Positions 6,862-63,766 of a stretch of 64,000 bases of DNA are shown here, piece after piece. The notes below the pieces were generated by a model. It made no database searches. It saw only the letters and a program-made list of their open reading frames with translations, and had not been told where the DNA came from. Every line of letters starts with the position of its first letter. Within the stretch, counting starts at the first letter, position 1. The stretch is from Epiperipatus broadwayi (Eukaryota; Animalia; Onychophora): positions 2,232,001-2,296,000 of the forward strand of contig JAQFVV010000002.1 in the NCBI GenBank assembly GCA_028023455.1, in the 5' to 3' direction. Both the position numbers and the translations under genes were made by a program.

Positions 6862-6955
6862 TCTCTCATGTGTCATAGCGTCCGCCGGGGAGCGAACCCG
6901 CTAACCCGGGACAACTGCTTATAAGGCAGCTGTGCTGACCTCTCGACCACCAACG
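6862..6955 (-). mobile_element. tRNA-Gly(TCC)-derived SINE (T-arm duplication subfamily)
   Basis: Minus strand: GCGTTGGTGGTCGAGAGGTCAGCACAGCTGCCTTATAAGCAGTTGTCCCGGGTTAGCGGGTTCGCTCCCCGGCGGACGCTATGACACATGAGAG. The flanking near-direct repeat CACGTTTG(T/A)TTTT lies at 6850 and 6956. Confidence 0.9.
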
Positions 6956-7575
6956 CACGTTTGATTTTCATTACATTTAATTTACAAATATGCGAGAGCA
7001 TACAAACTTATATAGGTAATACTTACAGCTACATATTTCTTATTAAAATTTAACATAAATAAATTTATTGAGTAAACTATACAAATAATTTTGTTACAAA
7101 ATATTATTATTACAAATGATAATGGTTTTGCGCCTGATGATTTTATTTTAAATGTAATTTACCCTCCCGCAAAGCCAGCTGGGTGGCGACATGATTTCAT
7201 CTCAATTTGTATTTCGAGGTCATTGTAAATTTATAATTGAATTCGACTTAAAGACATGTAGCTTAAATTGTTTCGTTTTGATTTTCTTTCTCAGCAATAT
7301 TAATTTCTTCAATAATAATAATACAGATTTAACTTTGAATAAATGAATTGTGTTATAGAAGTAAATAAATTATTTTCGGATGAGAGACCAGAGAAGATTC
7401 ACAAAAGCGAGCAAATTCACTTAAATCTTTTTTTTTTTTTAAATTCTTTACAAAAACATTTTTCAACTTCATTGTTTTATGTTAATTAAGAAATGAATAA
7501 TAAATATTTTAGTAATTTGTTATTATAAATTTTGTAATTATTATTTCAAAATTTGTCTATATATATATAGCTTTT

Positions 7576-7679: not shown

Positions 7680-8936
7680 ATATATATAGCTTTTAAAAGA
7701 AATATGAATAAAAATGCATTATTTGTCTATATAAAAATTATATTCCACGTTTAATATGCCGATTACAAATAAAGATTTTTAACATAGATAAAATACAAAA
7801 ATATCTTTATTTAACACAGTTTAAACGCATTGCATAACATATTAGTATTTCTATTAATTTAATTCTTAATACAAAACATTTTTGTTACTATTAGATAAGG
7901 AATAAAAATATAATAGACAATAAGTTAGAAGTGTAAAGAGTATATTATCTTAAATGTGGAGAATCTTAATTAAAGAAATAAAAATAAACACACCACTGCA
8001 TTTTCGGTTGTTTGGTAGCATTAGGATATGAGTTCCATTCCTCATAGGTAAATGATTACCATTATATTTTCATACAACAATTTGTGGTTATTCTGTTTAT
8101 GAAACTTTTTTCTGAAAATGTATCACTTATTGATTTAATAACATCAATATTTTGACTTTTTTCTAAGAGGTGTATGTATTTGACAACTTGTGCTCATGTA
8201 TAATTAGTTTTTTTCGATTGATTTCACGACTCTTTTAATTGCCAACTTTAACCCATCCATCATTTAAATTACTTTGCTTATCTGTAAAAGCAGATGCCTG
8301 AATACTGCATGTTTTTTTCTGATAAATTAATAATGTGATTAATTATTTAATGCCAATTCTATTTATTCATTTCTGATACTAATTTGATTTATTATTTTTA
8401 AAACACTTTAATTATGAAAATATGGTTATATTTTTATAAAATTGAGTCAGTTTCTAAGTTGTATAGATAAAAGAGAACTTTATTCAATGATTTATATTCA
8501 AATTTTACATTGGTTAGATATTAAGTTTCTAACCAAAATGAAGAAGAGTGAATTTATCAGCTATGCATTTAATAACAATAAGTTGTTTCAACCTTTTAGT
8601 GTCACAGCAATTGTAAACTTAATGTTTAATTGATATTTTTTTAAAAAACTAATGCATTGTAAATCTAACACAATTTGGTAAAGACTATTATGATTTAGTA
8701 CCTTCTACAAATCATCTTCTGAAAATTTCATTTTAAGATTTTAAATACAGTTTGTTTAAGCCACAAGTGTCATAATATACAAAAAAAATTTTTAAAAATG
8801 TCCTTTTTAAAATTTAATATAAAATAATAATTAATATTATTTCAATTATTTTTGCAAATTTTGATGATTTTTGATTGAGAAATTTAAAAACAAATGAACA
8901 GATGAAAAAGTCGGTACGTTAAGAAGTTTTATTATT

Positions 8937-9050
8937 AAACAAGGCAAAACTCTTCATACAATAGTGCCACCCTGTGCCAACCAAATAATCAATGGATGCC
9001 AGAAGGCTTGTGCATATAAGAGATAGTAATCATGTGATGTTTAGTGGTTT
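8937..9050. mobile_element. Short two-ended insertion of HHR repeat family C
   Basis: 8937-9016 matches 61090-61170 on the same strand, and 9030-9050 is the reverse complement of 61039-61059. It is flanked by AAGTTT(T/G)ATTATT at 8924-8936 and 9051-9063. Confidence 0.85.
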
Positions 9051-9104
9051 AAGTTTGATTATTCTGGTTCAATAGTACAGATTATTCAAACTGAAGATTT
9101 GCCT

Positions 9105-27615: not shown

Positions 27616-27655
27616 CCAAGATGCATTTCATGCTGAACCAGCACTCATCAGTTGG
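27616..27655 (-). ncRNA. Intact minimal type-I hammerhead ribozyme (family B, solo copy)
   Basis: CCAA CTGATGA GTGCT GGTTC AGCAT GAAA TGCATC TTGG. Stem I is CCAA/TTGG, stem II is GUGCU/AGCAU, stem III is the palindrome AUGCAU, and the cleavage triplet is AUC (cut between 27620 and 27619). Confidence 0.85.
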
Positions 27656-59903: not shown

Positions 59904-61202
59904 TAATTAATTTCTTCTCCATGTTCTACATGTCCACGTGATAAAAGATATTACATCGAAACTATCATGGGAAATGGATTATAATTTTACATTGCAAAAG
60001 ATGAACCAAGAGTCAAAATAATTGATACTGTGGATTCATGTGAAGAGTTTGTCAGATCTTTATGGACTTCAGGATTCACATTTTTACCATCATCATGCTC
60101 ACAAAAATGAACAAAACAAAAATGGAAATCATGTTGAATGTCCTAATCATGTGCATAAGGTGATTTTAACATTTTCAGAAAGAATTATTTTTGTAAAAAT
60201 ACAAGTAATAGTAAACTTAAGAATGTTTAATAATTCATTTCTTCATCTTTGAATATAGTGATCATTTGGGTTCAATTTATTGAAAAGGAAGATCTTAAAA
60301 TAAGTTTATAAACTCTGAAAAACTCTATTTGAGCATATTTTATTTTGTTATTTTATAACATTGTTTTCTATAACATTAATGTTTACTCTTTATGTTGATA
60401 ATTACACACAAAGAGTATGGTTTTTTTGCATTATAATATCATATATCAATTCAAAGTCTATTGGTACAGTGTTAAGGAGTATTTCAAAAATACAAGGCAT
60501 TATCCATTGATATAATTACTGAGTCATGATGAAAAAATAAATAAATTAGCAATGCAAGTCCTATTCAGTTACCTTATCAATATAGAGAGAAGAAAGAGTA
60601 ACAATAACCAAAACATTAAAATGAAAAGTCATTAAAAACAGTCTTTTTATAACATCCCATTGGTAGTGATTAAAAAAAGAATGGAGTAAAATGACTATGC
60701 ATCAATACCCACTAAATAAATCACTATATCAAAAAGGGATACACTACCATCCACCCATGAATTGCTAACAAATAATCTTTCCAACAGTAGATTTTATATC
60801 AAGCTAATGAAGCATTGTATTACATCCATAAAATCATAAATACAGAGCTTTTAAGTGTGAAGGATACTCATGTGCCTTCAAGAGGATGCTCTTTGGATTA
60901 ATCATCATTGGATCCATATATATTGTGATGTTTAGATCATGTGTAGTCAGATGAGCTTAAATCAATTATTTTCTATGTTTATGTTGTAGTGACCACTTCT
61001 TATAATTTAAAGAAACATATAACACATCTCCAATTATTAAACCACTAAACATCACATGATCACCTTCTCTATACTAGCACAATTGTTGTAAACAAAGGCA
61101 AAACTCTCCATACAGTAGTGCCACCCTGTGCCAAACAGAGTAATCAATGGATGCCAGAAGGCTTGTGCATAAAATCCCTATCTAGTGCCTACTCATCTAA
61201 TA

Positions 61203-61244
61203 TCCCCAGACTAGTTTCTGGCTTGTGGCCATCATCAATGAGGA
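61203..61244 (-). ncRNA. Type-I hammerhead, family C, C3U variant
   Basis: TCCTCA TTGATGA TGGC CACAA GCCA GAAA CTAGTC TGGGGA. Confidence 0.78.
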
Positions 61245-61853
61245 GCCTTGGATCTGAGAGCACTGCACCTAGATCTTAGGATCTAATGCAACCCTCCAGT
61301 GGCCATCTTTTAACTCTATTTTACTACAAAACTATGAGAATGAAATTGAAAACATTGTTAATATCTTCAATCTAAGCTCAATAGCTTACATAGTCATATG
61401 GGTCTGAACTCAATTCAGCTCCCATACATTTTGGTGACTTTGGCTCTTAAACAACCATAGCCACCACTATCCTATTAGGCAGGATTAGTGTTAAAACACT
61501 AAACATCACACGATCACCTTCTCTATACTAGCACTACTGTATGGAGAGTTTTGCCTTTGTTTAGTGCTAGTATAGAGAAGGTGATCGTGTGATGTTTAGT
61601 GTTTTAACACTAATCCTGCCTAATAGGATAGTGGTGGCTATGGTTGTTTAAGAGCCAAAGTCACCAAAATGTATGGGAGCTGAATTGAGTTCAGACCCAT
61701 ATGACTATATAAGCTATTGAACTTAGATTGAAGATATTAACAATGTTTTCAATTTCATTCTCATAGTTTTGTAGTTAAGTAGAGTTAAAAGGTGGCTGCT
61801 GGAGGGTTGCATTAGATCCTAAGATCTAGGTGCAGTGCTCTCAGATCCAAGGC

Positions 61854-61895
61854 TCCTCACTGATGATGGCCACAAGCCAGAAACTAGTCTGGGGA
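61854..61895 (+). ncRNA. Intact minimal type-I hammerhead ribozyme (family C)
   Basis: TCCTCA CTGATGA TGGC CACAA GCCA GAAA CTAGTC TGGGGA. Stem I is UCCUCA/UGGGGA, stem II is UGGC/GCCA, stem III contains the palindrome ACUAGU, and the GUC triplet is cut after 61889. Confidence 0.9.
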
Positions 61896-63766
61896 TATTG
61901 GATGAGTAGGCACTAGATAGGGATTTTATGCACAAGCCTTCTGGCATCCATTGATTACTCTGTTTGGCACAGGGTGGCACTACTGTATGGAGAGTTTTGC
62001 CTTCATCTCCAATTATTGCTCAAGAAATATCTAGATAAAAACATTAAAGTTAATTTACATCAACATACTTTCATGATAGAAGAGGTATGATAGAACAGGT
62101 AATCCTTCTGTTTATATAATAAGCAAATGTAGAATTAAACCACACACCATTATTATTGATGCAATCCAAATATTTTTAAAAGACATCAACAAAAAGCATT
62201 TAAAGACATTTCTTGATCAATTCATCATAGGTTCTATAAAAACTTTGTCAAGGAAATGAATCATTATTAAAATAACTTAAGAAAAAATAATAATGGGTCT
62301 GTACAAATAGGCAAGATTAGGCAAGAAAAAATAATAATGGGTGTGTACAAAGAGGCAAGATTAGGCTTTTAAGAAAAATGTCTTGGAGAGCATTGTATTA
62401 GCATATCCTGGTTTTTTCAGGTCATTCAAGGTGCATATTGCTAGTAATGATATGATCTAGGAACAAAGCTATTTCAATTAACTGATATTGAACAATTATA
62501 AGTAATATATTTTCTTAATATGTTGCTTAGCAGAGCAGAACTTAATTATCCTGTAACAGGGAAGTGAGATTTAGCTAATGTATGGATTTTCAGAAAATTC
62601 AAACATTTTCTATTAAGATTAAAGGTTACAGTAAAAACCAATCATAAATACTCACAATTTTAAACTATAATTATTTCACCAATGACATATTAATATGCTG
62701 GAGCCTGTTATTTTAGAAATTTTAATATAACCTTACATATTGTACTGCATCTAAAAATATAATTATTGATATTCTTAATCAAAATTCTATCTCATCTTCT
62801 TAACAGCACTGAAAAATAGAAACTACAATTATTCCTACAATAATATTTATTAGTACAATATAATCTTCAAAATCAGTTTGAATTGATAAATCTATCCTTT
62901 CATATTCTAATGCCAAAAATCATTAGTGGTAGATTAATCATTTATTTCCACTATTATGACACCAAATGGGTGGAGGAACAAATACTTCACAGGTTGGTCA
63001 ACTGACCTGTAATGTACTTTTTTTAGCCTGGTAACATTAAAAATGTGAAGTTTTTTTTTTTTTTTCCAAATTAAAAACTTGCAAATGAGAAGTGTGCAGG
63101 CAAAACTAATACTATCATACCAACAGATCAAACAAAATTTCATCTATTGAATTTTGTGTGCTTTTACCAGAATTCAGACAATATAGGTCCAGGTAGTATG
63201 AATGATGTAGTTTCTAAATATATTAGTAAATATACCACAAGAAATGCTGATGCTAAAACAACAATTTTATTAACATAAAAAACATTCCCCAACTTATGAA
63301 AGTTTATATACAATCATAATGGTAATGTATATCTTGTAACAGACCATGGATTAATCAGGGGACCTATAATAATTGATTATTGAAAGCAAAAAGCAATGAA
63401 ATAAATTGAAAAGATGCATATGATAATTGGTGCAGATGAGCTGAAAATTATAAAATACAGAAATTATGATAATAACAACATTACAAGATATGTCTTATTA
63501 ATTGAATTTGATAATGAACATGACTGTTACTTTTTTTATCCAAAGTAAATGAATATAAAATGTATTAAAGTTTAAGATCTAATTTAATCTGCATTTATGA
63601 TGATGAAAAAAAGTTAGTAGTCTGTCGATTATGGTTTTCCAGTTGTAGGGCACGTGTGGAATTAGAAAAAATTATCAACCTATCTAAAATGAAAAAGCCA
63701 GAGTGAATGTCTTCATGCATAAGTACATCATTCTTACAGATATATGTAAAGACATAATAAATATAA

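Follow-up and report, generated by a model that had tools for sequence, protein, structure and literature searches.

We analysed a 64,000-nucleotide stretch of the genome of the onychophoran Epiperipatus broadwayi (contig JAQFVV010000002.1, positions 2,232,001 to 2,296,000; hereafter the window, whose first letter is position 1). We propose that a palindromic insertion of 965 bp at 61039-62003 results from one retrotransposition of a high-copy, non-coding hammerhead ribozyme element of ~456 bp. We read this element as an animal retrozyme of the type without long terminal repeats (non-LTR retrozyme) and as a non-autonomous derivative or parasite of Penelope-like elements (PLEs), and put the probability of this reading at about three in four. 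To judge from its likeness to PLE insertions, the most likely agent of its insertion in trans is a PLE reverse transcriptase (RT) with a GIY-YIG endonuclease. The odd shape of the palindrome is the known insertion signature of PLEs and does not point to a new type of element.

Anatomy of the insertion

The insertion consists of two inverted arms inside an exact 14-bp target-site duplication, CATCTCCAATTATT, an unstranded direct repeat with its left copy at 61025-61038 and its right copy at 62004-62017. A repeat search placed the arms at 61080-61536 and 61562-62018, 97% complementary and separated by 25 nt. Within the limits of the element itself, the arms span 61096-61536 and 61562-62002, which gives 441 bp with 9 mismatches. 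An initial annotation of this DNA had already described the palindrome with its 441-bp arms, a hammerhead in each arm with the right core intact, and the 14-bp duplication, and all of these were found again when the sequence was re-read. Strong Rfam miRNA matches at 61455-61643 are artefacts of the palindrome centre and were rejected.

We numbered the repeat unit from u1 (61531) to u446 (61976). The right, or short-end, arm lies in sense orientation at 61531-62003 (plus strand) and runs from u1 to u446 and then again from u1 to u27 (~1.06 units), without the 8-10 nt that the family has between u33 and u34. The left, or tail-end, arm is antisense at 61039-61534 (minus strand; from BLAST of the unit and the inverted repeats), covers ~1.09 units and is 5'-truncated at u34. 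Read along the minus strand, it holds u34-u446, then u1-u33, 8 extra nucleotides and u34-u75. Its last ~50 nt (61039-61088, minus strand) are a tail, in which the unit runs on past the end of the other arm and of all single-arm copies, as an alignment of the ends of 17 insertions made visible. The arms meet in an unstranded head-to-head junction at 61531-61561, where they overlap by GCAC (61531-61534) and enclose an unpaired centre of 25 nt (61537-61561). This centre corresponds to unit positions 7-31 in sense orientation and is part of the right arm.

Each half is terminally redundant. In the right half, 61531-61557 and 61977-62003 are identical at 27 of 27 positions with a period of 446, exactly as first annotated. 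In the left half, the annotated period of 454 also held, but 61039-61080 and 61493-61534 are not the same block: they agree at 40 of 42 positions, with mismatches at 61042 and 61057. The period differs by 8 nt between the halves (454 vs 446) because the AATTGTTG stretch at 61081-61088 is missing from the right arm.

Three variants rare in the family occur in both arms, and therefore we assign the arms to one source. Seven of the nine differences between the arms are private to the left one. At 61042 and 61057, the outer (tail) copy agrees with the family majority, and the two inner copies, one in each arm, share rare derived bases. With one ribozyme motif per strand, the window copy could not release a monomer, and a read-through transcript of it would be a 440-bp hairpin.

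One insertion plan across the family

The plan of the window copy recurs in most of the sampled insertions of its family. We compared 52 insertions in 60 loci, 30 of which were chosen by unit similarity and 30 taken in genome order from ribozyme matches. The arms are always arranged minus-then-plus, that is, head-to-head with their 3' ends outward. Among the genome-ordered matches listed, opposite-strand ribozyme pairs within 2 kb were -/+ in 24 cases and +/- in none. An exact duplication of 12-19 bp (mode 13) flanks 24 of the 52 insertions; mismatched-flank controls reached an exact 12 bp in 2 of 400.

The outer ends follow a strict rule. All 20 two-arm insertions with a duplication combine one short end, which stops at ...GCCTTTGTT (u26-u35), with one tail end, which goes on for a further 40-50 nt (u62-u84). 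The corresponding ends of the window copy are u27 and u75. The single-arm insertions with a duplication are 5'-truncated and have a short end in four of four cases. The inner junction is different in every insertion, and arms vary from ~40 nt to 2.9 units. In the initial annotation, the halves were two different circular permutations of one unit, each slightly longer than one monomer. The fixed ends of the 20 insertions do not support arbitrary permutation, and the length turns out to be an accident of this copy. Of the traits that it proposed to look for in genomic copies, a high copy number and tandem units were found; permuted outer ends were not, as only the inner junction varies.

PLE insertions contain 5'-truncated partial tandems known as pseudo-LTRs (pLTRs) and often adjoin an inverted 5'-truncated copy. 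They carry a 30-40-bp tail on just one side, vary in the length of their target duplications and have hammerheads in the pLTR (Craig et al. 2021, PMC8557442). This signature of partial tandem, inverted 5'-truncated copy, one-sided tail and variable duplication is complete in the 20 of 20 two-arm insertions and in the window copy. The likeness to Penelope, Poseidon and Neptune elements includes the position of the hammerhead in the repeated, pLTR-like part. In contrast to PLEs, the family has no open reading frame (ORF), its tail measures 40-50 instead of 30-40 nt and visibly continues the unit sequence, and it has no sequence link to an autonomous PLE in the 30 loci examined. At the level of anatomy, the family agrees with the annotated single insertion of a non-coding, hammerhead-bearing retroelement from the world of retrozymes and PLEs.

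The 5' ends of the arms form loose clusters at u321-324, u336-352, u34 and u1-8. About 9 of 90 arm 5' ends fall within the 4 nt of u321-324, directly upstream of hammerhead helix I (loci L061, L062, L068, L075, L081, L083, L086 and L090). This cluster may mark the 5' end of the transcript or an RT stop, in a sample that was partly selected for the ribozyme and is possibly biased.

The window holds a second member of the family, a 117-bp miniature at 8936-9052, in which an 84-nt minus arm that reaches the short end stands head-to-head with a plus arm. The plus arm is ~35-40 nt long and essentially the tail alone, and the flanks read AAGTTT[T/G]ATTAT.

A high-copy retrozyme family

Searched with the unit, the 5.6-Gb genome gave at least 3,560 first-look candidates; identity is 94-96% for the best of them, with a period of 456 bp. 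The same spacing of 456 bp separates ribozymes on the same strand. In the sampled loci, the unit period is 446-456 bp and tandems comprise 2-3 units. Exact copies of the 35-nt ribozyme total 36,416 in the genome, 30,516 with A at position 10.1 and 5,900 with the U of the window copy, and reversed-pattern controls gave 0. In a dimer of the unit, stop-free stretches reach 76 codons at most. A literature search for the ribozyme sequence gave no match, and the family is a lineage-specific repeat.

Animal non-LTR retrozymes are defined by type-I hammerheads in tandem repeats of 150-450 bp, a low GC content (<45-50%) and duplications of >4 bp (Cervera & de la Pena 2020, PMC7229834). Their monomers are expressed, both as linear and as circular RNAs. 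[quoted passage not shown] It also shares with them tens of thousands of copies, a monomer that is highly self-paired in its predicted fold, and co-occurring PLEs. Several traits set it apart. Its unit of 446-456 bp lies at or just above the quoted size range, and the copies are mostly short dispersed insertions that hold no more than 3 units and an inverted arm, instead of long arrays. The anatomy of inverted arm and tail is mentioned in neither PMC7229834 nor bioRxiv 10.64898/2026.07.22.740005, and the circular RNA of the family is a putative one.

In public assembled contigs, whose status as RNA or DNA is uncertain, the ribozyme core at 61787-61962 is 10-100x deeper than the rest of the unit and common to many subfamilies. 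Many of these contigs diverge exactly at 61786 and 61962, and several organism labels hold the element. Neither ends of molecules nor usable junctions were seen in them. This suggests that the core is a conserved module of several repeat families.

The hammerhead motif

The right arm holds a type-I hammerhead motif with an intact core at 61854-61895 (plus strand), whose core and helices were read directly from the sequence. The core comprises CUGAUGA (61860-61866), GAAA (61880-61883), C-UA-G (61884-61887) and UC (61888-61889), with all conserved type-I positions present (C3 U4 G5 A6 N7 G8 A9, G12 A13 A14, A15.1-U16.1, H17). The geometry is also that of type I, with an open helix I of ~6 bp, a helix II of ~4 bp and a helix III of 1-2 bp. 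Helix I pairs 61854-61859 with 61890-61895 (6 bp including one G.U), helix II pairs 61867-61870 with 61876-61879 (4 bp), and helix III is the single pair C61884-G61887 closed by the loop UA, within the 6-nt self-complementary palindrome ACUAGU. The predicted cleavage site would fall after C61889, at unit position 359/360.

The motif of the left arm, at 61203-61244 (minus strand), has a damaged core. It reads UUGAUGA in the core at 61209-61238 (minus strand) and thus departs from type I at C3, which is changed to U at 61238. This change is private to the left arm, as C is found in 38 of 38 family copies.

In its canonical metazoan form, the type-I hammerhead has a 6-bp helix I, a 4-bp helix II, a helix III of 1-2 bp and a palindromic loop of 2-4 nt, and acts as a dimer, in which the second copy is needed to extend helix III (Cervera & de la Pena, PMC4209133). 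The motif found here resembles the type-I hammerheads of amphibian satellite 2, axolotl and Schistosoma in its 6-bp helix I, 4-bp helix II, one-pair helix III and palindromic loop, and, as in those dimeric hammerheads, two copies are expected to be needed for cleavage (PMC4209133, PMC7229834). Its loop 3 differs from theirs in having 2 nt (UA) within a 6-nt palindrome. A further difference lies in helix II. Its closing position, 10.1/11.1, is an A.A mismatch in the majority subfamily (30,516 copies) and U-A in the subfamily of the window copy (5,900 copies). In another subfamily, of 3,191 copies, the next pair of helix II is changed from G-C to A-U.

From this architecture, we would expect the ribozyme to act as a dimer when it cleaves multimeric transcripts. 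Folding by minimum free energy (MFE) was uninformative for the motif (-10.5 kcal/mol for the hammerhead-compatible fold vs an MFE of -13.8 kcal/mol), and the gain from folding it as a dimer was no better than for shuffles. When a monomer from ribozyme to ribozyme (L002:1414-1869) was folded as a circle, it reached -154.9 kcal/mol with 69% of its bases paired. Dinucleotide shuffles gave -120.5 +/- 5.8 kcal/mol (z = -6.0), and 0 of 100 were as stable. The predicted circular fold agrees with the highly self-paired retrozyme RNAs of the literature.

Penelope-like elements in the genome

PLE genes are abundant in this genome: a six-frame search returned 10,240 first-look GIY-YIG candidates, in open frames of up to 901 aa. 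Two PLE open frames had no Pfam family, yet RT and GIY-YIG motifs were visible in them. One very K/N-rich frame (L050:91-1776, plus strand) was matched by GIY-YIG at 40 bits in the six-frame search, and Pfam hmmscan assigned it no family. Minimal hammerheads of the forms CUGANGA or AUGANUA were absent from the 30 GIY-YIG loci.

Proposed mechanism of insertion

The insertion has a 3' end of the unit at each of its outer limits. This fits RT priming from both 3'-OH ends of the target, and the annotated view that both target ends were primed is supported. We propose that staggered nicks ~13 bp apart would expose two 3'-OH ends. One of them would prime RT on a retrozyme transcript longer than one unit, at a site ~45 nt inward from its 3' end, producing the short end, and the other would prime on the remaining 3' tail of the RNA, producing the tail end. 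The two antisense cDNAs would then extend toward the 5' end of the RNA over variable distances, be joined head-to-head through a microhomology of a few bases (GCAC in the window copy) and be filled in. A longer-than-unit transcript with non-identical units would also explain the bases at 61042 and 61057.

In the twin priming of L1, reportedly described by Ostertag and Kazazian in 2001, two target 3'-OH ends are said to use the RNA as template, with microhomology joining the cDNAs into inverted segments within one duplication. Our scheme shares with this model the priming from two ends and the join by microhomology. In L1, however, the segments are said to be different parts of one RNA, with no duplication of them and no tail, whereas the unit is common to both arms here and the second priming site would be 3' of the first.

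Several observations weigh against this reading. Three or four insertions without a detectable duplication (L068, L077, L084) have two short ends; such insertions are not predicted by the twin-priming scheme and therefore count against it. Which end was primed first, and what form the template had, is our inference. The Rfam check suggested in the initial annotation gave no hammerhead family at either sensitivity, whether 3 kb were scanned at E<=1 or a 101-nt slice at E<=10; the 1-bp helix III is the likely explanation. Because the Rfam models miss the motif, the hammerhead call leans on the direct reading of its core and helices and on the family evidence.

The family evidence includes the helix II pair 10.2/11.2, which is G-C in 36,416 genome copies, A-U in 3,191, A.C in 991 and G.U in 667. 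The A-U doubles far exceed the ~390 expected if single changes were independent. Helix II thus shows a compensatory change, yet a single event inherited by many copies. That helix II mattered in the master copy, with the compensated change carried by an amplified subfamily, is a modest but real indication.

As to the mobiliser, 30 GIY-YIG loci, each taken with 1.5 kb of sequence to either side, yielded no autonomous PLE that has sequence in common with the unit; they are a tiny sample of the 10,240. Because no autonomous PLE in this sample shares the unit sequence, we infer the mobiliser from the insertion anatomy alone. A phylogeny of Xenopus sequences has been used to argue that retrozymes derive from PLE pLTRs (Li, Clavereau & Pollet 2026 preprint, bioRxiv 10.64898/2026.07.22.740005), and the anatomy described here gives structural and independent support to this recent proposal that animal retrozymes are mobilised by PLEs.

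More tentatively, the tail of PLEs could be the 3' overhang of the template RNA past an internal site of first-strand priming, and the inverted copy could come from the second nick priming on that overhang. This is suggested by the strict combination of short and tail ends and by tail arms as short as the tail itself; we regard it as possible but rather doubtful. If true, twin priming on a longer-than-unit RNA would explain the tandem and inverted structures of PLEs, and a family of ~36,000 copies would be a natural record of PLE integration.

The element itself is an ordinary lineage-specific retrozyme family and opens no new category. It offers thousands of short, alignable insertions with the full anatomy of PLE insertions on a 456-bp non-coding unit, and could be mined to test models of the mechanism of PLE integration. 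Head-to-head insertions would give long hairpin RNAs if transcribed through, which may matter for silencing.

Alternative explanations

The explanation that survives best after PLE-type insertion of a longer-than-unit transcript is the one proposed at first: a circular monomer RNA, cleaved by the ribozyme and ligated, on which RT ran more than one lap from each target end, so that the halves would be arbitrary redundant permutations. We consider it unlikely. Rolling-circle copying would produce arms that exceed one unit and contain tandem units, but the outer ends are fixed family-wide instead of permuted, although site-specific initiation on a circle could likewise give fixed ends. The monomer folds very stably as a circle and circular retrozyme RNAs are documented in other animals (PMC7229834), yet the arm 5' ends show no pile-up at the cleavage site u359/360. 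The majority bases of the outer copy and the rare derived bases of the inner ones at 61042 and 61057 disfavour a uniform circular monomer as template, which would need extra events such as gene conversion from arm to arm. Within an arm, tandem units (median 96.2%) often resemble one another no more closely than do units from different insertions (94.8%), in a comparison where later decay is too great to tell a circular from a multimeric template.

A single cDNA could also have folded back on the internal inverted repeat GCACTA/TAGTGC and copied itself into a second arm. The window copy resembles such a product in that its arms are symmetric from u34 outward and its 25-nt loop is closed by a 6-bp stem. 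The orientation of the loop would make the right arm the original, and the left arm, which extends ~56 nt further outward, cannot be its copy; snap-back is thus excluded at the window locus. Since the arms of most other insertions start at different unit positions (e.g. 34 vs 299 or 187 vs 132), it is very improbable for the family as well.

Long inverted arms within a target duplication and a high copy number would also suit a cut-and-paste DNA element with long terminal inverted repeats, of the foldback or miniature inverted-repeat transposable element type. Such an element should have equivalent termini, a fixed structure and a fixed duplication. Here the termini are of two kinds, short and tail, single-arm 5'-truncated copies exist, arm lengths run from ~40 nt to 2.9 units with a new inner junction in every copy, and the duplication varies from 12 to 19 bp. 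These features contradict a foldback transposon, and we give it hardly any credence. Least probable of all is an assembly artefact or an inverted duplication after a simple insertion: palindromes are error-prone in assemblies and PLE structures trouble short-read assemblies (PMC8557442), but dozens of independent loci show the head-to-head plan, with a separate duplication around each complete structure, and the count of 24 to 0 for opposite-strand ribozyme pairs is against it.

Host sequence and other features of the window

The window has a GC content of 26%, and the flanks of the insertion are AT-rich, decayed and full of stops. No ORF of at least 180 aa was found in the whole window. The reading frame is continuous across the reconstructed empty site, as the initial annotation had stated. 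Its label of Gypsy RT is plausible but unproven: a Pfam RT_RNaseH match at 62568-62660, 560 bp downstream, is below threshold (E 0.0036; 17.9 bits vs a cut-off of 24.8), and the stop-free pieces of the flanks had no other Pfam match. From these sequence traces, a decayed LTR-retroelement pol is a plausible host. Paralogues of the host element showed no empty site, as relatives of the left flank reach only 69-79% and the right flank has none.

The right flank also contains a 44-bp tandem duplication (62279-62366) with 95% identity. Elsewhere in the window, an unrelated minimal hammerhead motif lies at 27620-27651 (minus strand), with CUGAUGA, a 6-bp helix II, GAAA-UGCA-UC and the palindrome AUGCAU; a strict descriptor for this type was passed by that one copy only. 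A borderline tRNA at 6877-6956 (minus strand; 32.1 bits vs 29) is the sole Rfam match above the gathering score in the window.

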